A DNA stretch of 64,000 nt from Rebecca billardiae RCC1528 (GCA_965240325.2 OZ251235.1:496001-560000), one strand, 5' to 3'; positions 31,693 through 62,960 are shown, numbered from the stretch's first letter. The notes: a model not told the origin generated them from the sequence alone. A program made the numbers and translations.

Positions 31693-33809
31693 ATGAGCTC
31701 AATCGTGCGTAACCACGGACCGCCGGGCATGGCCCACCCAACCGGTCGCAGCGCCGCGGGCGCCGCGGACAGCGGATCCGCGCGGGCGACGACGTCCGCG
31801 CGCGAGCTCGGCCTCGAGCAGCTGGGCGACAGCGCGAAGACCAACCAGATGCTCACTGGCGTGACGAACGAGTTTGCCAAGTTCGCAAGCTCCAACTCCA
31901 GCGTGAGCACCGACCTCTTCACCAGAACGGGCGGCAGCCTGAACCTGATGCCGGAGAGCACGTTCGTGACGCTTGCGCGGCAGCTGCCCTCGCTCGTCCC
32001 GATCACGAGCAAGATCAAGGAGAAGAACGAGCAAATCGCCACGGTGGACGCGGCGACGCGCTCCAAGGAGAAGGTGCTCCTCGTCCGCGCGAAGGTCGCG
32101 CAGCGAGAGCTCGACGGCAAGAACGAGCCGATGACACCGGTACCACTCGCGGCCGCGCCGGCGTTCCCGCCCGCGGCAGCGCCCTCTGACGCGTCTGCGG
32201 ACGGCGACGACGCGAGCAGCGGGCCGGCGAGCGGTCTCCCGAGCGTTGAGGCGACGGTGAAGTTCGATGGCATGTCCGTCACGGCGGAGGAGCTGCACGA
32301 GCTCGTCGAGGCCAAGCTCGCGGAGATCACGGCCGAGAGGGACATCACCATCGGTAAGATTGCCATACTCGGAGAGGGCTTTGCTGGCGTCTCCGCGCTC
32401 GACAGCCCGAACCTGATCTACCAGAAGGTGTATGAGAACTCCGCGGCCGTGCTGCTGAAGCTGTTGAAGTCGACGCTGAACGCGGAAGCGCAGCAGTACG
32501 TGGACGCGTGCTCGCGGCGCAAGGGCATGGGCCCCTACCCGAAGGCTGCCGAGCAGCTGCAGGCGTGGTGGATTGAGCTGCGTGAGCTGCGCGACGAGGT
32601 GAGCGTCGACCACCTGATGGACATCATGGCCCCGTACCTGAACACGGGGGAGAGCGAGCACAAGACATTCTCGGACCTGCCGTCGTACCTGGCGTACTCG
32701 AAGGAGCGGCAGCTCGTATTCGAGCGCCTGCGGGCGCCGGCCGAGGCGCTCGAGCTGGCCCGCGTGCTGCAGCCGCTGCGCAGCATGAAGGGCGACCTCT
32801 CGCTCAAGTTGAAGCTCGACAAGTTCCTCAAGATGCCGTACGCGGAGGTGACGAACGCGACGCTCGTCATGATGAACTCCGACCTCGCGAGCCACCCGCC
32901 GCGCGGTGTGATCACCGTGGGCAACGTGAAGGAGCGCCCGCCCCCGCGCCAGCCGCCGAAGCAGCCGGCGCACGAGGTGTCCGGCGCGACGACGCCGCAC
33001 GTCCCGCCAAAGCTGAAGTGCGACTTGTGTAAGGGGAACCACTACTACGGCAAGATGTGCTCGCAGTTCAAGCCGGACGGCCCGGTGCCGCCAGCGGTGG
33101 TCGCTGCGCGCGAGGAGCGCGCTGCTGCGCGCGCGCGTGCGAGGCAGGAGCAACCGGGCGCGGGTGCGCGCCGCGCCGCGGACCGCGGGGCCATCATCGT
33201 GCCCGCGGGTGTCCCCGGCCGGAGCATCGCACCGGGCGTCCGCGCGGTCCAGGCGATCGAGAACATTGACGAGGTGGAGCCTCACGACGAGGTGATCGGC
33301 GGGCGCGTCGCCGCCGCGGTCGTCGAGGACAAGGGGGGCGCCGAGCCGCCCAACCGAGCGAACGGGCGCATTGACTCCGCTGCCGACCGGTCAGTCGGCG
33401 GGATGTGGATGGTCGACGCCGGTCTTGTGGAGAACTTGACGGCGCAGAACGGCGCGCTCATCGGCTTTGATGGCGGGGCCGCGGCCTCGTCGCTCAAGGG
33501 CGAGATCACCGCGCGCATGCTGAGCGTGGACGGCTCCGACTCGCAGCTGATCAAGTGCGAGATCTGGATTGCCGAGGGCGTGGAGACCATCCTGCTGTCC
33601 GCGGACGCGCTCGCGAGCGTCGGCGCGACGACCACCATCTCCAAGTGGCGGCAGTCGTCGTGCGACTTCACGGACGTCGGAGGCGGCTACATCAAGATCG
33701 GCTCGGACGCGCGCGTCATCCTCGAGCTCCAGCCCGTCGAGGAGGCGGCCGCCGCCGCGGCGGGGCGCGTCGAGCCGGAGGCCGAACGCGCGCCCGCGCC
33801 CGCGCCCGT

Positions 33810-33847
<38 letters not shown>

Positions 33848-33873
33848 TCGGGCGCGCGCCGGGAAACGAGTAG
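31693..33873 (+). CDS. Element-2 Gag-protease ORF
   Basis: Zn knuckle CDLCKGNHYYGKMC, aspartic protease IDSAA, ILLS, (AP)n linker before the stop. Confidence 0.85.
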
Positions 33874-33928
33874 GGCCCGAGCGCGCGGCGGCTGAGCGAG
33901 CTGCTGCCGGGCGTGCGCGCACGCCCGG
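33861..33928 (+). promoter_or_regulatory. Candidate programmed -1 ribosomal frameshift signal
   Basis: G GGA AAC (33861-33867) in the correct X XXY YYZ phase, 7-nt spacer, then a GC-rich stem-loop at 33875-33912. Confidence 0.75.
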
Positions 33929-36900
33929 TGACAAGGAGCTCGGCCTGTGGGCCGCCCGCTTGGGCACGACGAACAAGACTTTGCTGACTCGCACTTGGCG
34001 CGCCACCGCTGGCATGCCGGAGGCGACGATGGCGCGCGCGCCGCTGGACACGCTGTCCGGCGCGCACATGAAACGACGGCCCTTTAACCGGCCCATGCCC
34101 CGCGCGACGCACCCGCGCGAGGTGACGCACATGGACGTGGTGTCCGTGTCGAAGATTGACTTGCCGATCGGCGAGGCCGGGATCCCGGTCGGCATGAAGT
34201 ACGCGCTGGTGTGTGTAGATGACTACTCGCGCCGGATGAGCGTCTACTTCTGCAAGTTGAAGTCGCAGATACCTGACCTGATCGCGATGTATTTTCGCGA
34301 GATGGGAGCGCACGAGCTGTACGGCTCGCACATCGAGCTTGGACCTGGGTTCAAGCGATTCCACATCCACACCGACGGCGGCACCGAGCTGAACTCGGAG
34401 CGCGTGTCCGAGCTGCTGCTGCAGCTTGGCCTCGCCGCCAACGTGACGAGCGCGCCCGACACTCCCTCCTCGAATGGGGTGGCGGAGCACGCGATCCAGA
34501 CTCTGGTGCGCGACACGATTGCGCGCCTTGCGATGACGGGCATGCCTGCCCAGCATTGGCACTATGCGATGCGCCACGCGTGCGCGAGCAGAAACCGCTT
34601 GGCGTCCAGGCGAATCATGCGCGACGGCGCGCTGATGTTCGTGACGCCCTACGAGCTTTTTTTTGGCAAGCCGCCGGACATGCGTCACGTGATCGTGTTC
34701 GGCGCCCCGTGCCGTGTGGTCCTGCAGGGACTCGAGAAGCAGCGGCGGGGCAAGCTGGGCATGCCGACGGTGCGTGGCCGCGTCCTCGGTCACGGCATCG
34801 ACGGCTCCCAGATCGACAAGACGTTCCGGCTGCTGCTGGGGTACGTCGTGCTGCTCGATGACGGGCGGGTGATTCACTCCAAGCACGTGTACATTGATGA
34901 GCGGTCGCTGGTCGAGGGGGGGCACACTCCGTTCGCGACCAGCTATGACGGTGCCGAGCCCGAGGGAGACGCCGCTGACGGCGAGCTCACCGGCGAGGGC
35001 GACGAGCATTTTGAGATTGAGGACGGTGCTGCCGATGACGGCGGCGCTGCTGCTCATGACGACGGGGGCGCGGCGAGCGAAGCTGCGCAACCGAGCGCCG
35101 ACGACGATGACGCCGGAGGCGATGACGACGCACGAGCTGGTGAGTCCGCGGCGCCCGAGCTGCCGCGCGACTACGACCCGATGCGACGAGACCGAGCGAG
35201 GCGGAGCAGACCCGCCGCGCAGACGGTGCAGGCTGTGACCGAGGCAGCGTTCCAGGCCGCGGGCGAGGAACCTACCGAGGAGAACAGCTTCGAGGCATTC
35301 GCTGCGACGACAATCGCGCGGATGAATGGTGTGCCGATCACCATCCCCACGACGTGGGACGAGGCGATGAAGTCGCCCGAGGCCAAGCTCTGGATGCAGG
35401 CCTGCCACGACCACCTCGACGCGCACGGCGTGAGACACACGTTCTTCGAGGTGATTGTGCCGGACAACACGCGGACGATTCCTGTCAAGTGGGTGTTCGA
35501 CGTGAAGACGCTTCCCGATGGCGAAGTGATCAAGTTCAAGGCGCGGCTGGTAACCCAGGGGTTCCGCCAGCGCGAGGGCATCGACTTCAATGAGGTGTTC
35601 GCCCCGACGATACGACCAGAACAGCTGCGGCTGATGCTCGCGATCGCGCTCAAGGCCAAAGGCGTCTCGATGACGGACGCGGCGAGCGCCAAGATCGTGG
35701 AGATGCGACCCGCCGACGTGCGGCACGCATACCTGAACAGCGACCTGCCGGAGGGCGAGGAGGTGATGACACCGCTCCCGCCTGGCTACACCCCGAAGAG
35801 CTCGACGCCGCTCGGCTCGAAGGTGGTCGCGAAGTTTGTGAAGGCGCTCCCTGGCATGCGCCAGGCTGGGCGCGTGTGGTACCTACACTTGCGTAAGTGT
35901 TTGCTCGAACATGGGTTCGAGCCGTGCCCGAGCGCGCCGTGCATCTACTCGAAGGCAGTCGATGGCGGCTACGTGTTCGTCGGACACTTTGTCGACGACC
36001 TGCTGATGATGAACATCTCGAAGGACAAGTCCGCGTTGGACGCGCTGATGACGGCGTTGTTGACGCACTACGAGATGCAGGGCGCGGACTGCTTGAGCAA
36101 GTTCCTTGGCGCCGAATTTGAGACCACGGTGGACGGACTTTTTACCCACCTGAACCAGTACATCGGTGATGTGTGCGAGCGCTTCCACCTGAGTGGAGAG
36201 CGCCACCCACCGACCCCCGAGTGCAGCGAGACGCGCGAGATCCCCCGCCCGCTGCAAGCCCTCCTGCTGCGCGCTGACCGCCAGCACTACCAGGAGATGA
36301 CCGGTGCCCTCATGTACTGCATGACGACGTGTCGCCCCGATATCGCACACGCCGTGAACATGCTGGCACGCCGGATGTCCAATCCCCGGCTCTACGACTT
36401 GACCGCCGCGAAGCGCACGCTCCGATACTTGCTCGGCACGCGTCGGCGCGGCATCCTGTTCCGGCACGCGACGCACGCACAACACCCTGATTTGGTGGCG
36501 TACGCGGACTCGGACTGGGCGAACGATCGTGAAGATCGACGTTCTACGACGGGATACCTTGTTATGTACAACGGGGTCCCGATCTCGTGGCACAGCGGAC
36601 TGCAGAGCGTGGTCGCGTTGTCTACGTGCGAGGCGGAGTACATCGCGCTGAGCGAGTGCTGCCGCGAGGTGATCTACCTGCGCGACCTGGTCACGTTTTT
36701 GAACGAGCCAGTCGTGGAGCCCACGACGGTGATCTACGAGGATAACCAGGGCACGATCGATTTGACGAACAACCCGGTGCACCACAAGCGCACCAAGCAC
36801 ATTGACGTGAAGTACCATTTCACGCGGCGCGCGCAAGCCGACGGCGCCGTGCTGATCCAGAAGGTGCCGACCGACGACAACCGGTCCGACATCATGACCA

Positions 36901-36983
36901 AGGCTACCGCGACGAGTACTTTTCTCAAGCACGTCGTGGCGATACTTCATGCTGTTCCACCACCTCCGCCGCCTTCGGCATGA
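33861..36983 (+). CDS. Element-2 integrase-RT-RNase H ORF (-1 frame relative to gag-PR)
   Basis: THMDV, VDDYSR, HTDGGTE, SNGVAE, FKARLVTQGF, FVDD, YADSDWA, STCEAEY, EDNQG, SDIMTK. Confidence 0.95.
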   Translation, partial: GKRVGPERAAAERAAAGRARTPGDKELGLWAARLGTTNKTLLTRTWRATAGMPEATMARAPLDTLSGAHMKRRPFNRPMPRATHPREVTHMDVVSVSKIDLPIGEAGIPVGMKYALVCVDDYSRRMSVYFCKLKSQIPDLIAMYFREMGAHELYGSHIELGPGFKRFHIHTDGGTELNSERVSELLLQLGLAANVTSAPDTPSSNGVAEHAIQTLVRDTIARLAMTGMPAQHWHYAMRHACASRNRLASRRIMRDGALMFVTPYELFFGKPPDMRHVIVFGAPCRVVLQGLEKQRRGKLGMPTVRGRVLGHGIDGSQIDKTFRLLLGYVVLLDDGRVIHSKHVYIDERSLVEGGHTPFATSYDGAEPEGDAADGELTGEGDEHFEIEDGAADDGGAAAHDDGGAASEAAQPSADDDDAGGDDDARAGESAAPELPRDYDPMRRDRARRSRPAAQTVQAVTEAAFQAAGEEPTEENSFEAFAATTIARMNGVPITIPTTWDEAMKSPEAKLWMQACHDHLDAHGVRHTFFEVIVPDNTRTIPVKWVFDVKTLPDGEVIKFKARLVTQGFRQREGIDFNEVFAPTIRPEQLRLMLAIALKAKGVSMTDAASAKIVEMRPADVRHAYLNSDLPEGEEVMTPLPPGYTPKSSTPLGSKVVAKFVKALPGMRQAGRVWYLHLRKCLLEHGFEPCPSAPCIYSKAVDGGYVFVGHFVDDLLMMNISKDKSALDALMTALLTHYEMQGADCLSKFLGAEFETTVDGLFTHLNQYIGDVCERFHLSGERHPPTPECSETREIPRPLQALLLRADRQHYQEMTGALMYCMTTCRPDIAHAVNMLARRMSNPRLYDLTAAKRTLRYLLGTRRRGILFRHATHAQHPDLVAYADSDWANDREDRRSTTGYLVMYNGVPISWHSGLQSVVALSTCEAEYIALSECCREVIYLRDLVTFLNEPVVEPTTVIYEDNQGTIDLTNNPVHHKRTKHIDVKYHFTRRAQADGAVLIQKVPTDDNRSDIMTKATATSTFLKHVVAILHAVPPPPPPSA

Positions 36984-44811: not shown

Positions 44812-47058
44812 TCACGAGTCGAGGGCGTCCACCTCGTCGAGGATCTCGCGCACGCGCGCGCGGATGAAGCCCGCCTCCGGCTCGAGGCCCCGCCGGTGCG
44901 GGTCGCCCGCTCGGTGGCCGGCCGCGCTGCGGATCGGCGCGAGGGTCGCGCGCGTGCCGAGCATCGCCGCCTCCTCGCGCGCGCCGCCGAGCGTGAAGTA
45001 CTTGTCGGTGTCGCACGGCATGAGCAGCACTCGCGCGCGCACGGCGCCGAGCGCGGCGCGCAGGTCGCCCTCCGCGTTGCGCGACACGTCGGCGCTCAGC
45101 CACGTGCCGAGCTGCGCGAGCATGTCGTCCGCGTCCGAGCGCAGGAAGCCGTGCACGTACGAGCTGCGGCCGAAGCTCTCCGCGTCCACGTGCCCGCCGT
45201 CCGTCGGTCCGTACGCGTCTGCGCGCTCGAAGTGGCCCTCCTCGTACCACGGCTCGCCCACGCCCCAGCCGGCGTAGATGCGGGCGAACGCGCGGAGGCC
45301 TGCGGCGGGCATCGCGGTGAAGCGGCCGAGCGCCTCGTCCCACGCCGGGTCGGCCTTGAGCGCGGCGACGAGCGAGTGGATGAACGTCGCGTTCAGCGCG
45401 GAGCAGCGCGCGCCGCCGCACACGACCGCGACCGCGCGGCACGCGTGTGGGTAGCGGACTGCCCACTCGAACGCCTGGAGGCCACCCATGGAGTAACCGT
45501 AGACGAGCCGGAGCTGGCGCGCGCCCGCGCCGCCGCCCACGCGCACGCCGAGCTGCTCCAGCACGGCCGCCTGCGCGCGCACGTTGTCGCCCACCGTCGG
45601 CGGGCCGCCCGGGCCCGAGAAGACGCGCCAGAGGGCCTCGCGGCTGCCAGCGCTCGCGCACGCCGCCGTGGACGGCGAGAGCGACACGCCGTTTCCGAGA
45701 AGGTTCACGGCGACGACGCAGTGCCGGTCGGTGTCGAGCGTGGCGCCCGGGCCGATCTGGTGCTCGAGCTCGGCGTGCACCGCGTCGAAGCTCGTCGGGT
45801 GCAGGATCACGCCGCGGCCGCTCGCCTCCGACGGCGGCGCGCCGTACAGCCGATACGCGACAAACGACCCTTCCGGGAAATGACCGCCGCGCTCTCGCGC
45901 CATGCCCGAGAGGTCGAGCGTGCGCAGCGCGGGGTCGGCGCGCGCGCGGAGCGCGGCGACGCCACCGCGCACCTCGGCGCGCGGGAGCGCGAGCGCCGCG
46001 AGCGCCGAGGGCGAGGCCTCGCCCTCCGCGGCACCACCGCCGCCGCCGCCGCGCGCCGCCGCCTCGGCCGCGCTCGCCTCCGCCGCCCAGCTGCGCGGCG
46101 CCCACAACAGCCGCTCTCGCGCCTTGCGGCTGCAGAGCACAGACGCGTTGCCGTCGAGGGGCGAGCGCTCCTCGAGCGCGGCGAGGCCGAGCGTGTCTCG
46201 CAGCAGATCGCGCGTCTCCACGCCGAAGCGCGTCTCCGGCGCCGCGAGCAGGTACGCCTCGTGCGCGCCCGGCGCCGCCGCCTCGGCGCGCCCGACCGCG
46301 GCGACGTGCGCGGCCACGACGTCGTCCTCGTGGGCGTACGCCCAGAAGACGAGGGGCAAGGGGCGCTCGGCGGTGGGCGGCGCCCAGGGCAGCTCGGCCC
46401 ACTTCTCCGCCTTGATCACGTTCGTGAAGCGCAGGCTGACGAACGACGTCGCCGTCGCCGTGCGCGCCGCCGCCTCGAGCACGAGCTCGCACGCCGCCTT
46501 GGACAGCCCGTAGCTCTCCAGAGGGGACGGCGGGTGCGCCTCGTCGAGCGGCAGGTAGCGCGGGCGGAGGGCCTGCTCGCCCGCGCCCGCGTGGGACCAG
46601 CCCATCGCGAACGCCGAGCTCGAGAAGACCACGCGCTGCGCGCCCGCCCACACGGCCGCGTCGACGACGGCGGCGGTCGAGCCCACGTTGTCGCGCAGCA
46701 GCGCAGGCGGCGACGCGTCCTCAAGGCCGATGACGTCGGCGGCGCGCGCGCCGGCGCCCGTGGCGGCGACGGCGGGGGGCGGCGTTGCCGAGGGCCCGGG
46801 CCAGGCCGCGCAGTGCACCACGGCGTGCACGCCGCCAGCACCGCCCATCGCTGCGCGCAGCGCGTCATGATCCTTGCCCGCGCCATCGGCGGCGGCCGCG
46901 AGGTCGCACGTGACAAACTCGTCCCACGAGGCGGGACCCGCGGGCTCGGGGGCACGGTCGACTCCGACGATAGCGTACTGACCGGTGGCGCGAAGCGCCG
47001 CGGCCACCTTGCCGCCCAGCCGCCCGGCGGCGCCAGTGACGACGACGCGGTGCCGCAT
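44812..47058 (-). CDS. Fusion protein: extended SDR (NAD-dependent epimerase/dehydrogenase) + MetX-like alpha/beta hydrolase, intronless, 748 aa
   Basis: SDR: VTGAAGRLG, VVHCAA, VVFSSS, YGLSK, SLRF. Ala/Gly linker. Hydrolase: LDTDRHCVVAVNLLGNG, GYSMGG (Ser), DTDKYF (Asp), AGHRAG (His). Confidence 0.88.
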   Translation of the reverse strand: MRHRVVVTGAAGRLGGKVAAALRATGQYAIVGVDRAPEPAGPASWDEFVTCDLAAAADGAGKDHDALRAAMGGAGGVHAVVHCAAWPGPSATPPPAVAATGAGARAADVIGLEDASPPALLRDNVGSTAAVVDAAVWAGAQRVVFSSSAFAMGWSHAGAGEQALRPRYLPLDEAHPPSPLESYGLSKAACELVLEAAARTATATSFVSLRFTNVIKAEKWAELPWAPPTAERPLPLVFWAYAHEDDVVAAHVAAVGRAEAAAPGAHEAYLLAAPETRFGVETRDLLRDTLGLAALEERSPLDGNASVLCSRKARERLLWAPRSWAAEASAAEAAARGGGGGGAAEGEASPSALAALALPRAEVRGGVAALRARADPALRTLDLSGMARERGGHFPEGSFVAYRLYGAPPSEASGRGVILHPTSFDAVHAELEHQIGPGATLDTDRHCVVAVNLLGNGVSLSPSTAACASAGSREALWRVFSGPGGPPTVGDNVRAQAAVLEQLGVRVGGGAGARQLRLVYGYSMGGLQAFEWAVRYPHACRAVAVVCGGARCSALNATFIHSLVAALKADPAWDEALGRFTAMPAAGLRAFARIYAGWGVGEPWYEEGHFERADAYGPTDGGHVDAESFGRSSYVHGFLRSDADDMLAQLGTWLSADVSRNAEGDLRAALGAVRARVLLMPCDTDKYFTLGGAREEAAMLGTRATLAPIRSAAGHRAGDPHRRGLEPEAGFIRARVREILDEVDALDS

Positions 47059-47377
47059 CGGCGTGTCCCCGTGTCGTACGTATCGGTGGGGCGTGAACAC
47101 GCGAGCAGTCCGCCTTTGATGCTTTTCCAGCTTGCAAGTCTGAATCGTTTCGGCTCTCAGACTGCCGATTCGGCCGCAGCACTCTGCACTCCAGCAAAAG
47201 CAACTGGAAAAGATTACTTGTTCAGGGTCTTCGCCTTTCGCCGGTCGAGCCTCATTCGCCGCGGGCGGTGATGAATGCCTACAACATGAGTACCGAGTAC
47301 GAACCGATACCGGGTACGGCTTGTACTGGTAGCTGTAGCCGCTTGTCGAGTCGCTCTCGCTCGCCAGCGCGGTCCAG

Positions 47378-48388
47378 ATGCTCCAGGTCGGACGACGTGC
47401 GCTCGCGGTCGGGTGGGCGACGCCTGCGCGCGCCCTGTCGTCGGCGGCGACTCTGCGCAGCCCGTCGCCCGCCTCCTTCGCCGCGCCCCCGCCCCTCCGC
47501 GCGGATCTGCCGCCCGTCGATGCGGAGCGGATCGTGACGCCGGACGTGGCGCAGGCGTTTGCCGCGGACGGCGCCGTCGTGCTGCGCGGCGCGTTTGCCC
47601 AGGGCGGGTGGGTGGAGGCGCTGCGCGCGGCGGCCGAGGACAACATGGCGAATCCAGGGCCGCTGTGCGACGAGCACGCGCAGGCGCAGGGCGCGCCGGG
47701 CCGCTTCCATGACGACCAGTTTCTGTGGCTGAGGCATGACACTTTTCGGCAGTTTGTCACCGCCTCGGGCGCTGCGGCGGTGGCCGCGCGCGCGATGGGC
47801 TCGACGACGGCGCACATCTTCTACGACCAACTTCTCGCGAAAGAGCCGGGCACGATCACGCCCACGCCGTGGCACAACGACACCTCCTACTGGCACCTCT
47901 CGGGCAAGCAGATCTGCTCGATCTGGGTCGCCCTCGACGAGGTGGACGCCGAGGCGGGCGTCGCGTACGTCGCCGGCTCGCACACGTGGGGCCTGCGCCA
48001 CCGCGTGACGAACTTCTCGGGGGACGCGCACTCCGACCGTAACGTCTACGAGGGCGTCGACGGCGCCGACCCTTTCGACCAGCTGCCGGACATCGACGCG
48101 GGCGTCGCGGACGGCTCGCTCCGGCTGCTCAGCTGGGACATGGCGCCTGGTGACGCGCTGCTCTTCGACTCGGCCGCCGTGCACGGCGCGCCTGGCCCGC
48201 GGGCGGGTCTCACCCGCCGCCGCCGCGGGTACGCGACGCGCTGGTGCGGTGACGACGTCCGCTTCGACAGCCGGCCGGGGACGATGGACCAGGGCTGGCG
48301 CGCTGCCGGCTACGACTGCGGCCTGTCGCACGGCGAGCCGATCGCGTCCGGCTTGCACCCAGACGTCCTGGCGATGCGCCGGGCGTGA
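47378..48388 (+). CDS. PhyH-family Fe(II)/2-oxoglutarate dioxygenase with presequence-like N-terminus, intronless
   Basis: DGAVVLRG, KEPG, TPWHND (HxD), SIWVALD, GSH, PGDAL, VHGA, RRRG. Confidence 0.92.
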   Translation: MLQVGRRALAVGWATPARALSSAATLRSPSPASFAAPPPLRADLPPVDAERIVTPDVAQAFAADGAVVLRGAFAQGGWVEALRAAAEDNMANPGPLCDEHAQAQGAPGRFHDDQFLWLRHDTFRQFVTASGAAAVAARAMGSTTAHIFYDQLLAKEPGTITPTPWHNDTSYWHLSGKQICSIWVALDEVDAEAGVAYVAGSHTWGLRHRVTNFSGDAHSDRNVYEGVDGADPFDQLPDIDAGVADGSLRLLSWDMAPGDALLFDSAAVHGAPGPRAGLTRRRRGYATRWCGDDVRFDSRPGTMDQGWRAAGYDCGLSHGEPIASGLHPDVLAMRRA

Positions 48389-48841
48389 GCCGCCAATGTT
48401 GCGCTTGGCGCCGGTGGACGGTGGTACGCCCGGCGGTACGCCGCGCACGCAGCCGGCCGCCAGGCGAGTCGTCGGGCGGTGCCATCGCGCGGAGCACAGC
48501 AACCGAGTTCATGGCCGTCGCCTGGCGAGGGCTGCTAACGGTGTGCCGTGGGCTGCGGTACGACGACCGATGCATGTGCCCGAATGCCACCGCGGTGACC
48601 ACTCACCAGTCACCACGGCTGAGTGGCAGAAAACTACTGAGAAAAAGTGTGTGAGCTGTGGAGTTGATCAAGAGTGCAGGTGTCTGTCTGATGAGTCTGA
48701 GATCCTCGCCTGACCTGATCTGTAGATCATTCGAACGTTCTGAGCCTGAAGATTCCAGCATGATGAATAGTTGCATCACACTTGCGGAAGCGGAAGGCTG
48801 CCCCATCGGGGCGCGAAAAGACGAGGTGAGATCTGGGCGTG

Positions 48842-50182
48842 ATGCCGCCCGCGAACGCGAAGGAGAATGGCCTGCAGCTGGCGAAGATCGCCAGTGAGCA
48901 GGGGATCCAAGCATTCCTGGTGTCTTACCTCGACCTCTTCGGCGTGCAGCGCGCCAAGCTCGTGCCGGCGTCCGCGATCGCGAGCGTCGCCAAAAGCGGC
49001 GCGGGGTTTGCCGGCTTTGCCGCGTACTTTGACTCGACGCCCGCGCACGCCGACCTGCTCGCCTTCCCAGACCCCACCTCTCTGATTCGCCTCCCGTGGA
49101 AGCCCGAGGTGGGCTGGCTCGCCTCCGACCTCTGGATCGACGACAAGCCGTACGCGCAATGCCCGCGACGCGCGCTGCGGCTGCAGCTCGAGGCGGCGCG
49201 CGCGGCCGGCTTCTCGTCGTTCAAGACGGGCGTGGAGGTGGAGTTCATGCTGATCGAGCCCTCGGGCGCGATCGACGCGCGCGACGACGCCAAGAAGCCG
49301 TGCTACGAGATCGGCGCCCTCATGCGCCGGTACGACGTGCTCAAGCAGCTGCTGGACTACTGCGAGCAGCTCGGCTGGGGGCCGTACCAGTGCGACCACG
49401 AGGACGCGAACGGTCAGTTCGAGCTCAACTTCGATTACGCCGACGCGCTCGTGACCGCCGACCGCATCGCGTTCCACAAGCTGATGGTGCGCTCCGTCGC
49501 CGAGCAGCACGGCCTGCGCGCGACCTTCATGCCTAAGCCGTTCGCGGACAAGACTGGCAACGGCGCGCACGTGCACTTCACGCTGCACGCGAGCGCGGGC
49601 GACAAGGAGCGCAACGTGTTCGCCGCGCGGGAGGGCGAGGAGGGCGACGAGTACGGGCTCTCGACCACGGCGCGCCACTTCCTCGGCGGCGTGCTCGAGC
49701 ACGTCACCGGCCTTTCCGCCATCGCCAACCCGACCGTCAACTCGTACAAGCGCCTGGGCGCGGCCGCGCCAGACTCGGGTGCGACCTGGGCACCGACCGT
49801 GGCCTCGCACGGCGGCAACGACCGGACACACGTGATCCGGGTGCCCGACGCGCCGCGGTACGAGCTGCGCCTTGCCGACATGGCGTCGCACCCGTACCTG
49901 CTGCCCGCCGCCCTGCTCGCCGCGGGGCTCGACGGCCTGGCGCGCAAGCTCGAGCCGCCGCCGCGCGCCAAGGTGGCCGCGTGGGCGCTGGACCCGGCCG
50001 AGGCGAAGGCGCTGCCGTCCAACCTGCTCGACGCGTTGCGCGCGTTCGAGGCGGACGAGGTGCTGCGGCAGAAGGTGGGCGTGGAGATGTGCGCCGCGCT
50101 GCACAAGCTGCGCATGAAGCAGTGGCGCGAGTACACGATGCACCTCACGGCCTGGGAGCTGGAGACCGGCCTCGACATCTAA
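48842..50182 (+). CDS. gmaS: GlnT/GmaS-type glutamate-amine ligase (gamma-glutamylmethylamide synthetase-like), intronless
   Basis: DLFGVQRAKLVPA, GAGFAGFA, LPWKPEVGWLASD, GVEVEF, DHEDANGQFE, FMPKPF, GNGAHVH, NSYKR, NDRTH, YELR and the WE...LD* C-terminus are characteristic of proteobacterial glnT/gmaS. Substrate is inferred. Confidence 0.85.
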   Translation: MPPANAKENGLQLAKIASEQGIQAFLVSYLDLFGVQRAKLVPASAIASVAKSGAGFAGFAAYFDSTPAHADLLAFPDPTSLIRLPWKPEVGWLASDLWIDDKPYAQCPRRALRLQLEAARAAGFSSFKTGVEVEFMLIEPSGAIDARDDAKKPCYEIGALMRRYDVLKQLLDYCEQLGWGPYQCDHEDANGQFELNFDYADALVTADRIAFHKLMVRSVAEQHGLRATFMPKPFADKTGNGAHVHFTLHASAGDKERNVFAAREGEEGDEYGLSTTARHFLGGVLEHVTGLSAIANPTVNSYKRLGAAAPDSGATWAPTVASHGGNDRTHVIRVPDAPRYELRLADMASHPYLLPAALLAAGLDGLARKLEPPPRAKVAAWALDPAEAKALPSNLLDALRAFEADEVLRQKVGVEMCAALHKLRMKQWREYTMHLTAWELETGLDI

Positions 50183-50848: not shown

Positions 50849-52585
50849 ATGCAGCGACCTCATCCGCTCGCGTCGCACGAGCAGGGTGACCATCCGCTCG
50901 CTCCCTCGACCATCGCCACGAGCCTCCCGCCAGCAGCTTCAGCAGGTGGGCCGCCCACGCCGTCGTGTGGCGGCCCGGCGCAGCAGCCGGCAGCGGGTGG
51001 CACCGCGCTTGCAGCGACCACTGCTGTCGAGCAGTTCCTCGGGCGCTCGTTCCAGTGGCGCAAGCCGACGGAGCAGACGGTCAGCGCGGACATGAAAGGA
51101 CTGGATACGCTCGCTACCTCCGGGGCGTGGCACGCCACCATCAAGCTGGCCGACCGCCTCGTCGGCAGTGCGCAGCCTCACCACCGGCTCCTCATCCGGC
51201 TGTACAAGATGGTGGCGCTGCTCAAGGTGCGCCAGTTCCGCGTGGCGGTGGAGGAGATGGCCTCGATGGGCGATGCCGAGGCGGAGGAGTACCAGTTCGA
51301 GCGGCATGCCGAGCTCTACCCCGACCGAACCGGTGCGCCGCGCCACACGTGCACGCGCCGGCCGCGATGCCCGCGCGCGCCTGGGTGGGATCGCTGGCAG
51401 CAGCCGCATGCACGGGTGCTGGCAGTGGCGGCGGTGCTTCAGCCATCCGACTGGACTGGCGGGCACCCGCGCAGCCGCCCAAGCACCCCTGGCGCGCGGC
51501 CGTTGCCTCAGCCCGCGAGCCGGCGCGCATCCGCCCGCAGCAGCCGGTGAGGTGTGTCGCCCGCGCGTCGCATCATCCACCTCATGGCAGCACACGCCTG
51601 CGCCGCCCCTCCGCGTGCACCCCCTGTCCATCAGGCTCGATGGTGCCCTTTGCGCTGCACATCCTACGGGCGCAGCTGCCGTACTACATGGGCGACACGG
51701 CCACGGCGCTGGACGCCCTCCTCGCCCTGGTGGCGCGGTGCGACTCTGCACGGCAGCTGCGAGAGGGCTCTCGCGCGCACGCGGCCGCCTCGGCAGGGCT
51801 CGGTGGGGCTGAGGAGGAGGGGCCCACGGAGACGGGCTTCGACCATCCGCACAACGAGCGCGCGGCGAAGCTGGCCCTAGCGAACCTCCACATCGTGCGC
51901 GGCGACGTCGAGCTGGCGATCGCGCTGCTGAGCGAGCTTGCTGCCAGGCGCGCAGACGACCTCGCACTCATGTCCATGCTTGGACGCTTGCACCTGCAGG
52001 TGGGCGCGCGCAGCTGAGCGCCGTGCCCGCGCGCGGTGCGCGTGCGCACGGCCGCCGTCCGGCGGACGCGCTCCGCGCCGCCCGCCTTCTCGCGCCGCGC
52101 GCCCCTCAGCGCCCCCCGCCCCCGCCCCCGCCCGGCCCGGCCCGCAGCTGGGAGACGTGTCCTCGGCTGAAGACGTGTTCGACCGGCTCGAGTGCGCCGT
52201 GCCCGACTGCGACGCGAGCGGCGAGGTGCGCACCAACCGCGGCTTCTTTGCGATGGCGCAGGGGAACTACGCGCTCGCGCGCGACGAGTTCGACGCCGCG
52301 CTCGCCTCGGGCGCCCCCGGTGTCGTCGCCGCGAACAACCGCGCAGTGTGCTCGCTGTACCTCTGCCAGCTGACCGACGCGGTCGCGTCCCTCGAGGAGT
52401 TCCTCCGGACAGACCCGGTGGCGCACCTGCAGCCGACGCTCGTGTCCAACCTCTTCGCGCTGTACGAGCTGCAGAGCGACCACGCTGCGGTGCACAGGCG
52501 CGCGATCGAGCAGCTCGCCGCGCTTGTCGCGCCGGATGACTTCGACCTGCGATCGTATTCAGCCGGCGGCGGCAGCGTCTCGTGA
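50849..52585 (+). CDS. TRAPPC12: Trafficking protein particle complex subunit 12 (introns 51333-51634, 52000-52147)
   Basis: ELYPDRT|GSMVPFALHILRAQLPYYMG signature, C-terminal TPRs, NNRAVCSLY, NL..LYEL. Confidence 0.9.
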
Positions 52586-52897: not shown

Positions 52898-54973
52898 TTA
52901 CACGCCCAGGCCCAGGGAGCCTGGCAGTGCTGACAGCGCCTGACTCGTCGAGGAGACGCTGCTCGACGACACAATCCCCTCGGATCCCCAATCGTGGCCG
53001 ATCTCGAGCGGGTTCAGGAGGGCGCCGCCTGTGTCGAACGGCACGCCGGCGGGGTGCAACTTGGGCTCGCGCCAGCGCTGCCCGAGCGCTTCGGCCCAGC
53101 CGAGGCCACCGGCGCACGTGTAGTGGTCCATGCCCGGCGAGCGAGCGCCCGGGCGGTCCTTGAGCTGCTGGTGCGCGCCGGACTGCACGAGCATCGTGTA
53201 CAGCATGGGGTCGCGCTCGAGGACGGACGCGCGCTGGTGCTGAAAGCGCAGCAGCCTGGCGTTCGACCGGGAAGGACGGTAGCCCGTGCACGCCCACGCC
53301 ACCGCGTCGTCGACCCAGCGCCTGCTGCGGCCTCCCAGCGCGATGCTCCGTGCCGCGTTCAGCTCGAACAGCAGCACATCGCACGCGCTCAGCGAGGGCA
53401 CGGGCTCGCTCGCCGCGACTGCGGCGGTCGGCATGCCGGAGCGCCAACGGCCGTCAGCATCCTTCCACAGGGCGAAGGCGAAGGGCGCGCGCTTGGACTC
53501 GGCGCGGAAGCTCAGCCGCACGCAGAGGCCACCGGCAGAATCGCCGCCGCTCACAACCGTGGCCTTGAAGCCCGCGCGGCGGCACAGCTCGGCTGCAAGC
53601 GGCACGACCGCCGGCTGCGCCACCCTCGGGTGCGTGTCGAGCAGTCGGCCGAGCGGCCCTCGGGCCTCGGTGCGCGCGCTGCCGCCGAGTGTGCCCGTGC
53701 GCCCGGAGGTGAGCGCGTTCGGCTCGGTGAGCAGCTTGTCGATCACGATGCACGGCAGCGCGCGCAGGGCCTCCTCCTCGCCGCCCCAGCTCTCAGCGCT
53801 CTGGCGGATCTCGTTGAACTCCGCGCCCACCGTGGCGGCGAGCCGGTCCATCTCCGCCAGCAGTGCGGCGGGCTCGGCGAACGGGTCGTCCCAGGTGCCG
53901 AGCACAAGCGCGCCGCACTCCACTGGGCAGTCCCGGCCGTTCGCGCAGAGCGCGGCAAGGCCCAGCCCCTCGAGACGGCACCAGTCGCGCCGCCGGACAT
54001 CGCGCGTCACGCACAGCGCAAATGCGCGTGCCAGCTTGTACCTCCGGCTCGGCGCTCGCATCTGCGAAGGCCCGCCGGCGGGGCCCGCCCACGACGGCGG
54101 CTCGACGAGCAGCGGCTCGCGCGTGCGCTCGCCCGCCAGCCCGCGCAGCGCCTCCCACACCTGCTCGCCTGCCGCGCGCACGAGCCTCGGCCCGAGCGCG
54201 CCCACTGCGGCGCTGAGGTCGTCCGGCTCGAACAGCGGCGGGGCTTCGCCGGCGGTGGTGAGCGGCGCGTCGGCGGACGCGGGGGGCATGGGCTCGTCGA
54301 AGAGCTCGGCGTACGCCCGCCGAACCTCGCGCACGGCGAGCGCGTCGAGCACGTGCCGCCGCGCAAACTCCGCCTTCCAGACCAGAGCGCGCCCGCCCTG
54401 CGCGACCACGCCTGCGACGCGCCGGTGCCGCAGGTTGGCCGGCCGAACGCGCACGCCGCGCAGGCGCGCGACGCGTGCGGCCGCCCCGAGGTCCTCGTTG
54501 GAGCCGTCCGACCACGGCTTCTCCGGGAGAAGGCACACCTCGAGCCACGCGCGAGACTCATCGCCGAGAACGGACTGCGGGCTGAGCACGAGCGCGTGAC
54601 GGCCCTCAAACTGCGGCTTGTTGGCGAGGCCGTGGATCGTCACGAGGGCGCCTGGTGGGAGTTCATCGGCGGACTCCGGCGTGGATGCGAGCATGTCGCC
54701 CACGGGGCACAGCGCCGCAAACGCTCGGTAGCGTGGCCACTGGGCGGCGAGCTGATGCCGAGGGCGCGGGAGCTGCCATGTGCGCGCGCACAGAGCTGCC
54801 CACAAGTGCTCGTCGCAGGCGAGCTCGCGCAGCCGGCGGCACGCGCAGCACACGCGACACAGCGCCAGCGGATCTAATTTGCGCAGCCACTGCAGCGTGA
54901 TGTCATCGGACAATTCGATGAGAGACATCGGTGTCGGGCAGGCGGCCCGGTCATCCCCCAAGGGAGCCACCAT
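52898..54973 (-). CDS. F-box protein, possibly FBXO21-like
   Basis: LIELSDDITLQWLRKLDPLALCRVCCACRRLRELACDEHLW F-box; VECGALVLG..DP...LLAEMDRLA segment resembles FBXO21/SirB1. Start uncertain (54928-55015). Confidence 0.7.
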   Translation of the reverse strand: MVAPLGDDRAACPTPMSLIELSDDITLQWLRKLDPLALCRVCCACRRLRELACDEHLWAALCARTWQLPRPRHQLAAQWPRYRAFAALCPVGDMLASTPESADELPPGALVTIHGLANKPQFEGRHALVLSPQSVLGDESRAWLEVCLLPEKPWSDGSNEDLGAAARVARLRGVRVRPANLRHRRVAGVVAQGGRALVWKAEFARRHVLDALAVREVRRAYAELFDEPMPPASADAPLTTAGEAPPLFEPDDLSAAVGALGPRLVRAAGEQVWEALRGLAGERTREPLLVEPPSWAGPAGGPSQMRAPSRRYKLARAFALCVTRDVRRRDWCRLEGLGLAALCANGRDCPVECGALVLGTWDDPFAEPAALLAEMDRLAATVGAEFNEIRQSAESWGGEEEALRALPCIVIDKLLTEPNALTSGRTGTLGGSARTEARGPLGRLLDTHPRVAQPAVVPLAAELCRRAGFKATVVSGGDSAGGLCVRLSFRAESKRAPFAFALWKDADGRWRSGMPTAAVAASEPVPSLSACDVLLFELNAARSIALGGRSRRWVDDAVAWACTGYRPSRSNARLLRFQHQRASVLERDPMLYTMLVQSGAHQQLKDRPGARSPGMDHYTCAGGLGWAEALGQRWREPKLHPAGVPFDTGGALLNPLEIGHDWGSEGIVSSSSVSSTSQALSALPGSLGLGV

Positions 54974-55054
54974 GGACACCGGACTTCCGGCAGCAGCACC
55001 CGGACATCGGCACATCGTACTCGCGAGCGGAACCGCAGTGGCGCGCGCGCAGCG

Positions 55055-56105: not shown

Positions 56106-56996
56106 TCATGCGCTCGGCAGGACCGTGCTGTGCCGACGCTGATGCGGCCACCCCGAGATGTACCGGAGCATCCGCCACGGGTTATGCCGTGCGAGCTGGT
56201 AGTGGCTCATCAGCCTCTGCCGTAGATGCCTGCCCCTCCGCAACGCGCCCGCTTCGGCGCCGCGCGCGACCCGCCGCGACGCTGCTGCCCGCCCCTGGCC
56301 GTGCTGCTGCGCCGCTTGCCGCTGCAGGAGGAGGCCCAACCGCAACCACGGCTCCGAGACGACCGTGATCCCGCGAGCCGCCGCCTTGCGCACGAGCTGC
56401 GTCTTGAAGCGTACCGCACGGTCAGTCGCGACGACATAGCGCACGCGCTTGTTCACCGTCGGCGACACGTCGCAGCCGTGGCTGCGGATCAGCTCGATCA
56501 GAGCATCGCGGCTCGGAGAGAAGTTGCCGGTCAGCGCGACGCGTGTCGAAGGGGCGATCGGCGTGGGTTCTGGGTCGTCAATCTCGCGCTTGTAGACTGG
56601 CGGCGGCTTACCCGCGCGCAGCCGCTCCAGTAAAGTCATGGGCTTTGCGCTTGGCTCGGTGCCACCTCCAATGGCGGCCTGAGCATCCGCATTCGATGGC
56701 TCGCGCTGGCCCTTTTCCTCCTCGTCGTCTCCGCTCACGCTCGCGTGCGCGGCGTCCTCTTGGCGGCGCTTGCTGATCATCGCCGCGAGCTCCTCCTTGG
56801 ATGGCCGCCGCTCCAGAAACTTGCGCAGGGCATCCTCCTTGTTCGACACGATCTTGCCGCCCGGCCATGCGATTCGGCGTCGCGGTTCGATCGGAGGGAC
56901 GTCGGGCGACGTGCTGAAGCGCTCGCGCCGAGCGTCCAGCTTCGCCTTTTGCTCCTCGAGGAAGCGCGCATCAACACGAATCGGGGGCGGCGGCAT
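56106..56996 (-). CDS. BRCT-domain protein with RPEL-like motif
   Basis: LRKFLERRPSKEEL (RPEL-like); VALTGNF..SRDALIELIRSHG...V.K.VRYVVA...KA...GITVVSEPWL (BRCT). 3' end uncertain. Confidence 0.65.
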   Translation of the reverse strand: MPPPPIRVDARFLEEQKAKLDARRERFSTSPDVPPIEPRRRIAWPGGKIVSNKEDALRKFLERRPSKEELAAMISKRRQEDAAHASVSGDDEEEKGQREPSNADAQAAIGGGTEPSAKPMTLLERLRAGKPPPVYKREIDDPEPTPIAPSTRVALTGNFSPSRDALIELIRSHGCDVSPTVNKRVRYVVATDRAVRFKTQLVRKAAARGITVVSEPWLRLGLLLQRQAAQQHGQGRAAASRRVARGAEAGALRRGRHLRQRLMSHYQLARHNPWRMLRYISGWPHQRRHSTVLPSA

Positions 56997-57150
56997 GCGG
57001 TAGGCTATGCGGCACGGCGCCGACGGCGGAGTCACGCCCGTGAGGCGACGGAGCGCGCGACTGCCCGCGTCGTCGTCGCAGTGGATGCCGGTCTGCACTC
57101 TGCCCTCTGCCGGATCCTCACGACAATGGCGGCCGGCCAAAGACAGAGCC

Positions 57151-58125
57151 ATGGAGGCCATCACATTGCTGGCTGTCGTTCTGGTTTCCGTTGTCGCCGT
57201 CGCGCGTCGGCGGCTTCTCGGCTGGTGGGTGGACCCGCACGTGGAGCTCAGGCGCGACATGCGTGGCCGCACGGTGGTGGTCACCGGCGGCACGTGTGAC
57301 AGCTTGGGCGCGCACGTTGCCGCGCTGCTGGCGGGCTTGGGCGCACGGGTGATCGTGACCACGCGCACCAAGGCGAAAGGCCTGGACGCGTGCGAACGAG
57401 TCGCCGATGCCGCAGCATCAGGTGGCTCGTGCGAGTTCGTCCTCATGGACCTGCTCTCGGACGCATCCGTCCGCCGGGCAGCCGCGGAGATTGCCGCCCG
57501 TCTGAGAGGTGCGCCGCTCGATGTGCTGGTCCTGAACGCCGGCACGCTCTTCGGCACGCCGGCCGACATCTTCCAGGCCAACTATCTCGGCCACTTCCGC
57601 CTCGTCGAGCTCCTACGCCCGCACCTCCTTGGCGCGGCGCGGACGCACGGCGATGTGCGCGTGATTGCTCTCTCGTCCGACACGCACGTGCATGCAGCAA
57701 TCGACCACGACAGCCCGTTCGAGCCGCGCACGGGCGGCCCTTACATGCAGAGCAAGCTCGCGGCCATCATGCACATGCGCGAGCTCCAACGGCGCATGTG
57801 CATCGAGGCGGGTGGCCACGTCGAGCCCCACGCGATCAAGTGCGTGAGCGTGCACCCAGGCTTCACAGCGACAGGCATCTTGCAGCTGACATGGTGGATG
57901 CGGCCGCTGCGGCCCCTGCTCTTCTGCCTGAGCAGATCTGTGCGCTCGGGTGCGCGTGGCGTTGCGCTCCTCGCGTGCGCCAGCGATATCACTGGCGGCT
58001 CGTTCTATGCTAACTTTGCGCGTTGCGCCTCGCGGGGCCTCGGCGGCTGCTCGAACGATCCGAGGGAGTGCTCGCGGCTGTGGCTGCTGAGCGAGCGCTG
58101 CCTTGAGGAAAGCAGACACCCGTAG
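57151..58125 (+). CDS. Short-chain dehydrogenase/reductase (RDH12/WWOX-like)
   Basis: N-terminal TM helix, VVVTGG...LG, LVLNAG, NYLGHF, YMQSK, VHPG. Confidence 0.9.
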   Translation: MEAITLLAVVLVSVVAVARRRLLGWWVDPHVELRRDMRGRTVVVTGGTCDSLGAHVAALLAGLGARVIVTTRTKAKGLDACERVADAAASGGSCEFVLMDLLSDASVRRAAAEIAARLRGAPLDVLVLNAGTLFGTPADIFQANYLGHFRLVELLRPHLLGAARTHGDVRVIALSSDTHVHAAIDHDSPFEPRTGGPYMQSKLAAIMHMRELQRRMCIEAGGHVEPHAIKCVSVHPGFTATGILQLTWWMRPLRPLLFCLSRSVRSGARGVALLACASDITGGSFYANFARCASRGLGGCSNDPRECSRLWLLSERCLEESRHP

Positions 58126-61445: not shown

Positions 61446-61763
61446 CGGTGCCGCGCCCACGCGGGCGACGCGCCATCGTGCAAGCCAGATTCCTTTTTAA
61501 CCATTGGCGCCGCCGCCCCGGGCGGCCGGGCCCGTCCGCCGCCTGCGCTTATTGCTTACTTACTACTCAGGGTATCATAGTAATTGCTCGAACATGACCG
61601 GGTCCTCCCTTGACCGGGTAGAATCTTTTGCCGTAGCAAGCCCCGAACAGGCACCCTCGAGGAATCTAACTCATTTGCGGACGCGCGTGGAGGAGTGGTG
61701 CGGCGCCCCTTCGAGCCAACTGTCTCCTTGCTGTCCCCCACTACATCGGCGCCCACACATCGG

Positions 61764-62960
61764 ATGGCGGCGATCGGCATGCTCGGCGCTCGGACGCCGC
61801 ACGCGCTACCCTCAGCCGTCCACGACATGCCGTTGCCCCCTCGCGCCGCGGTTGGCGGCGCCGCCTCGCCCGCCGTGCACGCGGCGCTCGGCCGCTATAA
61901 CGTCAAGGGTGAGGATGCGCACCTGCTGAGCGAATCGGTCGAGCTCGAGCCCGGCCGCGTCGTGCACGTGTACGGCGTGTTCGACGGGCACGGCGGCCCG
62001 CGTGCCGCGAACTTCGCCGCTGCGCACGCCGTCAAGCGCCTCGTCGACGGTTACCAGGCGGCGAGCAAGGGCTGGGGCGCCAGCTCGCACGAGGCTCGGC
62101 TCGAGAGCGCGTGCCGCAGCGCGTTCGTCGGCCTCGACCAGGCGTTCATCGCGTCGAGCCCGGGCGCGCACGACGGCACCACCGCAACCGTCGCCATCGT
62201 GGACGCCGAGCGCATCACCGTCGCCAGCGTCGGCGACTCCACTGCGCGGCTGCTCGTGCGCAGCGCGGACGGGTCGGTGAGCGCCTTCCAGGCCTCGGCC
62301 GACCACCGCGTGGATCGGCGAGATGCGGCGGAGGAGGCGCGGGTCCTCGCGGCCGGCGCGCAGATCGGGCGCGTGAAGGGCCGCGACGGCAAGCCGGTCG
62401 GCCCGGAGCGCCTCTACCCCGGCGCGCTGGCCGTCTCGCGCTCGATCGGCGACGCGGACGCGGGCCAGGCCGCCATCGCCACCCCGGAGGTGCACACGCA
62501 CTCGTTCCCTGCGCACGGCGGCGTGCTGCTGCTCGCGACGGACGGGGTGTGGGACTTTGCGAAGGAGGCCACCGTCGACCAGCTGTGCGGGGTCGCGCTC
62601 TCGCGCTCGCTCAGCCCGAAGTGGCTCGCGCACTCGCTGATGGAGAAGGCGAGGCCTGCGAACGCCGGCGAGGACGACGCGACACTGATCGCCGTCCTCC
62701 TCGGCGTGCCGAGCGCGGCGCAGGACGGGAGCGCCGGCTCCGCCAAGTCGGCGAGGGAGAGCGTCGGCGCGCGCATCAAGTCGCTCTTCGGCCGGACGCG
62801 CTCGCACGAGACGCGCTCTGTGCCCGACAGCCCTCGCGCTGCCGATGCCTCGGGCCGCCATGTTCGCCAGTCGGACCCGCCCACCTCCCCGAGCACCGGT
62901 GGCAGCAGCCACGGTCGGCGCAGGGCGCTCCGGCTCTCGCTCGGCGGTGGGCAGAGGTGA
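61764..62960 (+). CDS. Protein phosphatase 2C (PPM family)
   Basis: KGED, GVFDGHGG, DGTTA, SVGDS, DHR, LAVSRSIGD, ATDGVWD, EDDAT. Confidence 0.95.
   Translation: MAAIGMLGARTPHALPSAVHDMPLPPRAAVGGAASPAVHAALGRYNVKGEDAHLLSESVELEPGRVVHVYGVFDGHGGPRAANFAAAHAVKRLVDGYQAASKGWGASSHEARLESACRSAFVGLDQAFIASSPGAHDGTTATVAIVDAERITVASVGDSTARLLVRSADGSVSAFQASADHRVDRRDAAEEARVLAAGAQIGRVKGRDGKPVGPERLYPGALAVSRSIGDADAGQAAIATPEVHTHSFPAHGGVLLLATDGVWDFAKEATVDQLCGVALSRSLSPKWLAHSLMEKARPANAGEDDATLIAVLLGVPSAAQDGSAGSAKSARESVGARIKSLFGRTRSHETRSVPDSPRAADASGRHVRQSDPPTSPSTGGSSHGRRRALRLSLGGGQR

Follow-up and report, generated by a model that had tools for sequence, protein, structure and literature searches.

The window analysed here is a stretch of 64,000 nucleotides from the genome of Rebecca billardiae RCC1528 (GCA_965240325.2, OZ251235.1:496001-560000), with positions counted from its first letter. 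At its centre of interest lies a gene for a GmaS/GlnT-type ligase, preceded by a gene for a PhyH-family dioxygenase and, in divergent orientation, by a gene in which a short-chain dehydrogenase/reductase (SDR) is fused to an alpha/beta hydrolase. The explanation that fits these genes best overall, and which we hold to be reasonably likely, is that of a GmaS-type ligase acquired by gene transfer and working in a three-gene unit for amine nitrogen. The genes and spacers of this unit are arranged as follows.

44812-47058, minus strand: fusion gene, 748 amino acids, joining an extended SDR (Epimerase) at the N-terminus to a MetX/MekB-like alpha/beta hydrolase (Abhydrolase_1) at the C-terminus.
47059-47377, no strand: spacer of 319 bp between the divergent fusion and dioxygenase genes.
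47378-48388, plus strand: PhyH-family Fe(II)/2-oxoglutarate dioxygenase gene, 336 amino acids, directly upstream of the ligase gene; Pfam PhyH, E 1.6e-25.
48389-48841, no strand: spacer of 453 bp between the dioxygenase and ligase genes, GC 0.62.
48842-50182, plus strand: GmaS/GlnT-type gamma-glutamyl-amine ligase gene, 446 amino acids and a stop codon, intronless and without a presequence; match to TIGR03105.

The open reading frame (ORF) of the ligase is open on the plus strand from 48839 (GTG) or 48842 (ATG) and ends at 50182. The ATG at 48842 is the true start, because a transcript-like relative (L001) opens with the identical residues MPPANA. Gln-synt_C is the sole Pfam domain of the protein (residues 106-441, E 3e-81). 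Moreover, the NCBIfam model for GlnT/GmaS, TIGR03105, which carries the name 'type III glutamate-ammonia ligase', is matched with 538.4 bits against a cutoff of 469.6, and residues 14-444 cover model positions 2-434 of 435. The original prediction had suggested a comparison of hidden Markov models for GlnT/GmaS and for types I, II, and III of glutamine synthetase (GS); here, only TIGR03105 is matched above its cutoff. The GlnA model TIGR00653 gives 245.8 bits (cutoff 429.15) and the GlnII model 30.4 bits (cutoff 500), placing the protein outside both families, and the gamma-glutamylputrescine synthetase model gives 218 bits (cutoff 650). With 446 residues and Gln-synt_C as the only domain found, the protein also differs from GSIII (GlnN) of diatoms and haptophytes, which has about 700 residues. 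The predicted unlikeness to GSII and GSIII is thus confirmed.

The best match of solved structure is GmaS from Rhodovulum (RhGmaS; PDB 7cql), with 516 bits over residues 12-445, and alphaproteobacterial proteins are 57% identical to the ligase. In the alignment, residues 11-445 are colinear with the bacterial homologues, while the N-terminus carries about 10 additional residues and no presequence. Hence, the end-to-end colinearity with proteobacterial GlnT/GmaS that had been claimed is found over nearly the entire model, and the gene indeed has no intron and its product no presequence. The motifs named in support of the family are located at residues 37-43 (RAKLVPA), 53-60 (GAGFAGFA), and 185-194 (DHEDANGQFE); the C-terminal motif, given as 'WE..LD*', was only approximate, as the protein ends with WELETGLDI before the stop. 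The ORF is a nuclear gene of a GC-rich alga, and its product is a glutamate-amine ligase of the bacterial GmaS/GlnT family that depends on ATP and, having no presequence, is of cytosolic type.

The active site agrees closely with that of RhGmaS, whose residue numbering (PMC7948447) was transferred through the 7cql alignment. The catalytic residues Asp177 (D185), Glu186 (E194), and Arg312 (R328) are retained and invariant in all 161 of 161 aligned rows, and Arg317 (R333) is likewise retained. All seven residues of the methylamine pocket are present, namely Tyr147 (Y155), Gln175 (Q183), Asp177 (D185), Glu179 (E187), Glu186 (E194), Asn188 (N196), and Lys30' (K39). Residues by which a true GS handles ammonium are absent: the position of Asp50' is occupied by Ala57 and that of the Glu-flap glutamate by Trp316. 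The predicted function, joining glutamate to a small amine, is well supported by this pattern, and methylamine is most likely the substrate, though the GmaS family takes other small amines.

An altered pocket is seen in a deep bacterial clade of GS-like proteins (L048, L049, L051, L069, L075, L076, L062, and L067), where Gln175 is replaced by Ser, Asn188 by Asp, His237 by Asn, and Ala48' by Thr. In five of the eight loci of this clade, a divergently transcribed hydrolase gene of the NCBIfam family NF005757 adjoins the ligase gene. These enzymes probably use a different amine.

Eukaryotic genes flank the ligase gene on both sides within one contig. The following features were assigned by Pfam.

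27948-30644, plus strand: copia-type ORF with RVT_2.
33555-36983, plus strand: copia-type ORF with RVT_2.
50849-52585, plus strand: pieces of a TPR-containing ORF downstream of the ligase gene, with frames shifting as expected for an intron-bearing gene.
52898-55015: F-box gene.
56106-57581: BRCT gene.
61695-62960: PP2C gene, not adjoining the cluster.

One of the two copia-type ORFs additionally contains an integrase core. The names APC7 and TRAPPC12, given to flanking TPR genes in the original prediction, could not be confirmed, since Pfam assigns TPR repeats only. The codon usage of the ligase gene was said to resemble that of its neighbours, and this is indeed the case: its GC content at third codon positions (GC3) is 0.944, compared with 0.81-0.94 in neighbouring ORFs, and the spacers are lower in GC.

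Close relatives of the ligase are few. In a collection of 5.8 billion proteins, the top match, P0001, is 84% identical to it; one truncated match reaches 64% and all other full-length matches 59% at most, those with names belonging to Pseudomonadota. P0001 is encoded on a transcript-like contig of 1770 nt (L001), where a leader of 32 nt precedes the coding part and a trailer of about 390 nt, A-rich at its end, follows it, and the ratio of nonsynonymous to synonymous substitution rates (dN/dS) between it and the ligase is 0.17. Two more relatives, P0042 (L003) and P0121 (L162), also lie on transcript-like contigs with one sequencing frameshift each. A fourth, P0062 (L163-L165, GC 73-75%), is split by a 94-nt GT-AG insertion in phase 1, identical across three assemblies, and excising it yields a gap-free alignment; to judge from these features, the insertion is a spliceosomal-type intron. 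A dN/dS of 0.53 between the window and L163 was rejected as unreliable, as GC3 is near 0.95 in both and synonymous sites converge. Downstream of its ligase gene, L163 carries a gene for a Nodulin-like/NFD4 transporter, and between these two lies an HNH endonuclease gene (1778-2410 of L163, minus strand, 210 amino acids).

When a profile was built from this eukaryote-type group, its members alone stood out (888, 862, and 671 bits, bacteria reaching 633 at most). A sixth member was found through a neighbouring gene: the GS-like gene on L168, a contig of 482 kb that also occurs as a TARA scaffold, whose protein is 52% identical to the ligase. The number of eukaryotic members is a lower bound, since the L168 protein (52%) did not stand out in word-based searches, in which it would be hidden among bacterial matches at 54-59%. 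The L168 protein has an Arg/Ala-rich, presequence-like N-terminal extension of about 35 residues (L168 11560-11653).

Maximum-likelihood trees (LG+C20+F+G4, with support from ultrafast bootstrap and the Shimodaira-Hasegawa-like approximate likelihood-ratio test) place this group within bacterial diversity. In a tree of 78 rows, the eukaryote-type sequences, five in number, group as one clade (100/100) outside a bacterial crown of 56 rows (100/99), which contains Alphaproteobacteria, Gammaproteobacteria, a planctomycete, Leptolyngbyaceae, and others. In a tree of 74 rows that includes L168, all six eukaryote-type rows form one clade (94/60), with Vulcanococcus (Synechococcaceae) and L032 as its sister (91/52). 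Deeper bacterial clades enclose this grouping (100/99 and 100/100), so that bacteria are found on both sides of it; without L168, the eukaryote clade joins the bacterial crown weakly (82/5). A mostly proteobacterial crown of 50 rows (100/99) likewise excludes the eukaryote clade. These topologies indicate that the ligase gene was transferred from bacteria to eukaryotes, most simply in a single event. Because the gene belongs to a six-member eukaryote-type clade, the transfer is also older than the present species. The original prediction of an old transfer into a eukaryotic nuclear genome is thereby upheld in its bacterial source, its nuclear location, and its age, but the proteobacterial donor that it implied is not shown by the trees, and a picocyanobacterial sister is weakly supported. 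Nesting within a eukaryotic clade had been named as grounds for abandoning the transfer. Such a clade does exist, with six sequences, but it is itself embedded in bacteria, so that the transfer stands.

Two other origins have to be considered. The ORF is intronless and bacterial-like, as would be expected of bacterial contamination or of a chimeric join in the assembly, yet such an artefact is very improbable given the eukaryotic genes on both sides within one contig and a GC3 equal to that of the neighbours. Moreover, the same three genes are clustered on the independent 482-kb eukaryotic contig and its TARA scaffold, one relative carries a spliceosomal-type intron, and a close one lies on a contig that resembles a transcript and ends A-rich. 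Descent from the cyanobacterium that gave rise to the plastid, i.e. endosymbiotic instead of later horizontal gene transfer, deserves somewhat more attention but is also improbable. It would agree with the sister position of Vulcanococcus and L032 in the 74-row tree (91/52), where a hydrolase gene adjoins the ligase gene, and with the occurrence of the corresponding operon in Leptolyngbyaceae. However, the sister support is modest and the clade groups with the bacterial crown once L168 is left out (82/5). Because L144 and L032 are deviant in amino-acid composition and the majority of the eukaryote rows derive from GC-rich genomes, compositional attraction may account for the cyanobacterial sister node. 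In addition, cyanobacterial rows fall in two separate positions of the tree, the ligase has no transit peptide, and the gene occurs in few eukaryote-type sequences. We conclude with high confidence that the ORF represents a genuine GmaS-family gene and that it is of bacterial origin.

The dioxygenase encoded directly upstream of the ligase contains the HND iron motif. Its nearest relative of solved structure is MysH (9c9n; 113 bits, E 1e-31), matched in two stretches, the better of which comprises residues 47-209. Its N-terminus is extended by about 50 Arg/Ala-rich residues (window positions 47378-47540). An extension of this kind, resembling a mitochondrial presequence, is also present in the dioxygenase of L166 (43-160) and is missing from that of L168. 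Which protein of the cluster is targeted may accordingly vary from species to species, being the dioxygenase in the window and in L166 and the GS-like protein in L168.

The fusion and dioxygenase genes point away from each other, and from this divergent arrangement only we infer that the spacer at 47059-47377 is a putative shared promoter region. The top NCBIfam match of the fusion protein is NF005757. Its NAD-binding motif TGAAGRLG, the YxxxK motif YGLSK, and the serine elbow GYSMG are intact. A full scan with the hydrolase half yields about a dozen proteins, 600-730 amino acids long, in which an SDR is fused to the hydrolase; two of them are assigned to named organisms, Rhizochromulina marina and Norrisiella sphaerica (both MMETSP cultures). 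In two further proteins, P0293 (1082 amino acids) and P0326 (607 amino acids), the hydrolase domain is joined to a domain of the PP2C or the histidine phosphatase kind, which may reflect merged gene models or further fusions.

Orthologues of the fusion gene are found in L166, L168, L171, and L173. In the algal contig L168, genes for Amt, the fusion protein, the GS-like protein, and the PhyH dioxygenase follow one another within 7.5 kb amid EB1/CH, FKBP, and ankyrin genes. In L166, which shares its run series and GC content with the intron-bearing ligase contigs, the PhyH gene adjoins the fusion gene. The proteins of L166 and L168 are 64-70% (PhyH) and 47-60% (fusion) identical to those of the window. 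Besides the three cluster genes, no gene of L168 matches the window, and the gene orders differ. Because the three genes stay together while their flanking genes change, their adjacency bears the hallmark of metabolic gene clustering. We consider it probable that they form a functional unit.

Bacterial loci show two kinds of context around the ligase gene. Of the 165 loci fetched, more than 100, almost exclusively bacterial, have one or more mgs or mgd genes of the N-methylglutamate pathway next to it. In a minority, a MetX/MekB-like hydrolase of NF005757 directly adjoins it instead, and the context in the window matches this hydrolase kind, not the mgs/mgd kind. Loci in which the GmaS-like gene has a hydrolase homologue as its immediate neighbour are L088, L104, L144, L018, L024, L032, L037, and the L048-L075 clade. 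The hydrolase half of the fusion protein is 33-39% identical to the hydrolases adjoining bacterial GmaS-like genes, with E values down to 1e-59. In Alkalinema (L088), Vulcanococcus (L144), and Pirellulales (L104), an oxygenase of the FA_desaturase family is additionally encoded upstream of the hydrolase. The resulting order of oxygenase, NF005757 hydrolase, and GmaS-like ligase spans 3790-7302 in L088, 4117-7320 in L144, and 2979-7314 in L104, i.e. in two unrelated cyanobacteria and a planctomycete. Such an operon may serve in place of the N-methylglutamate pathway.

From these elements, a route for amine nitrogen can be proposed. The ligase would activate the gamma-carboxyl group of glutamate with ATP and condense it with a small primary amine, giving gamma-glutamylmethylamide if methylamine is the substrate. 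The dioxygenase would then hydroxylate the N-linked carbon of gamma-glutamylmethylamide, and the resulting hemiaminal would break down to glutamine and formaldehyde (or another aldehyde). The amine nitrogen would thereby enter the glutamine amide directly, bypassing free ammonia. Finally, the SDR-esterase fusion might oxidise and then hydrolyse an aldehyde adduct or thioester, a step that is conjecture. Oxidative dealkylation by the dioxygenase is proposed because no genes of the N-methylglutamate pathway are seen within the 64-kb window. By analogy with MysH, we put this specific chemistry forward tentatively. More doubtful still is the full picture of a new algal route in which the ligase, the MysH-like dioxygenase, and the fusion protein (together with Amt in L168) would take up methylamine or alkylamine nitrogen, the ligase-hydrolase pair deriving from a bacterial operon that is itself an alternative to the N-methylglutamate pathway, and the clustering being kept by selection in algal nuclei.

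Among other functions for the three genes, the main rival is biosynthetic: the gamma-glutamyl amide formed by the ligase would be an end in itself, for instance an osmolyte, a secondary metabolite, or a compound akin to theanine, and would then be tailored by the dioxygenase, the SDR, and an acyltransferase or esterase. O-acyltransferases share the MetX/MekB fold of the hydrolase half, MysH is a tailoring enzyme in a biosynthetic cluster, the bacterial partner oxygenase weakly matches GntB (NCBIfam), a biosynthetic amino-acid hydroxylase, and the broad substrate range in the GmaS family would leave room for such products. Uptake is, however, the better fit to the gene for an ammonium/methylammonium-type transporter that adjoins the L168 cluster, and the methylamine pocket is the same as in enzymes whose genes adjoin mgsABC, so that we regard a biosynthetic role as unlikely. 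Still less probability attaches to an ordinary ammonium-assimilating GS, which is how rhizobial GlnT, as 'GSIII', was first described. The family name in NCBIfam, the Rhizobium sequences within the same family, and the partial activity of RhGmaS with ammonium chloride (PMC7948447) would point in this direction, yet Asp50' and the Glu-flap glutamate are exchanged for Ala57 and Trp316, the GlnA model is matched far below its cutoff, and the Km of RhGmaS for ammonium is far above that for methylamine (PMC7948447).

Several observations weigh against the reading of the locus as a transferred ligase in an amine-nitrogen unit. At two positions, the ligase differs from RhGmaS, with Trp189 exchanged for Phe and Ser239 for Thr, the former exchange also being present in bacterial rows whose genes adjoin mgsABC. 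The pocket does not fix the substrate, because RhGmaS also takes ethylamine, hydroxylamine, propylamine, and, poorly, ammonium (PMC7948447). The fusion protein's role in aldehyde disposal is a conjecture. Genes of the N-methylglutamate pathway may lie elsewhere in the genome, as the search for mgsABC and mgdABCD covered the ORFs of the 64-kb window, where none is seen, and no PhyH homologue occurs in the bacterial loci fetched. In the algal genome L176, the fusion gene is present with neither a GS-like nor a PhyH gene within 8 kb of it, and two other bacterial representatives of the hydrolase have no GS-like neighbour. In a quick hydrolase tree, the eukaryotic domains do not join specifically with the bacterial hydrolases adjacent to GS-like genes, and a joint transfer of ligase and hydrolase is unsupported for this reason. 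Lastly, a public run of 2024 (X1) contains four contigs of 151-179 nt that all fall inside the ligase ORF (49177-50139, 0-5 differences), and none from the flanks. They may stem from this organism, or one very close to it, sampled at low coverage, or else from RNA.

Among known systems, RhGmaS of marine Rhodobacteraceae (7cql, PMC7948447) agrees with the ligase itself in length, in colinearity over residues 12-445, and in the catalytic and pocket residues, and likewise has neither the Asp50' nor the Glu-flap glutamate of GS. In contrast to RhGmaS, the window ligase is nuclear, has no mgsABC or mgd gene in the 64 kb, and is partnered by a dioxygenase and an SDR-hydrolase fusion. Rhizobial GlnT (TIGR03105; Rhizobium L095 and L116) is of the same family but lies inside the proteobacterial crown, from which the eukaryote clade is excluded (100/99). 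The bacterial operon in L088, L144, and L104 resembles the window in its ligase family, its identical pocket, and its homologous hydrolase, whereas its oxygenase is a membrane di-iron enzyme instead of a PhyH-type one and its hydrolase has no SDR domain.

Only the logic is shared with the bacterial routes of PuuA (putrescine), IpuC (isopropylamine), and NpaA1 (aniline and 1-naphthylamine), in which a ligase masks the amine before an oxygenase and a hydrolase act (PMC11335346). Unlike the window ligase, these enzymes belong to other GS-like subfamilies, as the 218 of 650 bits with the gamma-glutamylputrescine model illustrate. The proposed dealkylation has its model in MysH of palythine biosynthesis, for which alpha-hydroxylation of the N-linked carbon has been proposed, followed by spontaneous hydrolysis that releases the N-substituent in the form of an aldehyde (PMC10666671). 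The substrate of MysH is a mycosporine-like amino acid, unlike the one proposed here, and no other gene for such compounds is seen among the scanned ORFs of the window. Methylamine use in yeast proceeds via the amine oxidase AMO1, the formaldehyde dehydrogenase SFA1, and the S-formylglutathione hydrolase FGH1 (PMC5816127). Like the proposed route, it lets a eukaryote draw nitrogen from methylamine, releases formaldehyde, and needs a dehydrogenase and an esterase-type hydrolase downstream, activities that are fused here. It differs in starting with a copper amine oxidase, in freeing ammonia, and in having no ATP-dependent glutamylation; the likeness is functional, without demonstrated homology.

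The ligase is thus an added member of a known family, and what is new is the eukaryotic clade with partner genes other than those of the N-methylglutamate pathway. A full-text search of the literature on gmaS or gamma-glutamylmethylamide synthetase in haptophytes, algae, and eukaryotes, and on its gene transfer, gave no description of a eukaryotic GmaS; the cluster itself was not searched for. Methylamines are an abundant part of marine dissolved organic nitrogen. Microalgae are described in one study as usually unable to metabolise methylamines and as relying on bacteria to free ammonium (PMC7574528), and gmaS serves as a marker gene for methylamine-using bacteria (PMC7948447). The locus offers a tractable example of metabolic gene clustering in a eukaryote for which bacteria have a counterpart operon. 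If the eukaryotic GmaS-type clade is active, gmaS surveys might also catch eukaryotic reads, and some algae would use the methylamine nitrogen pool directly.

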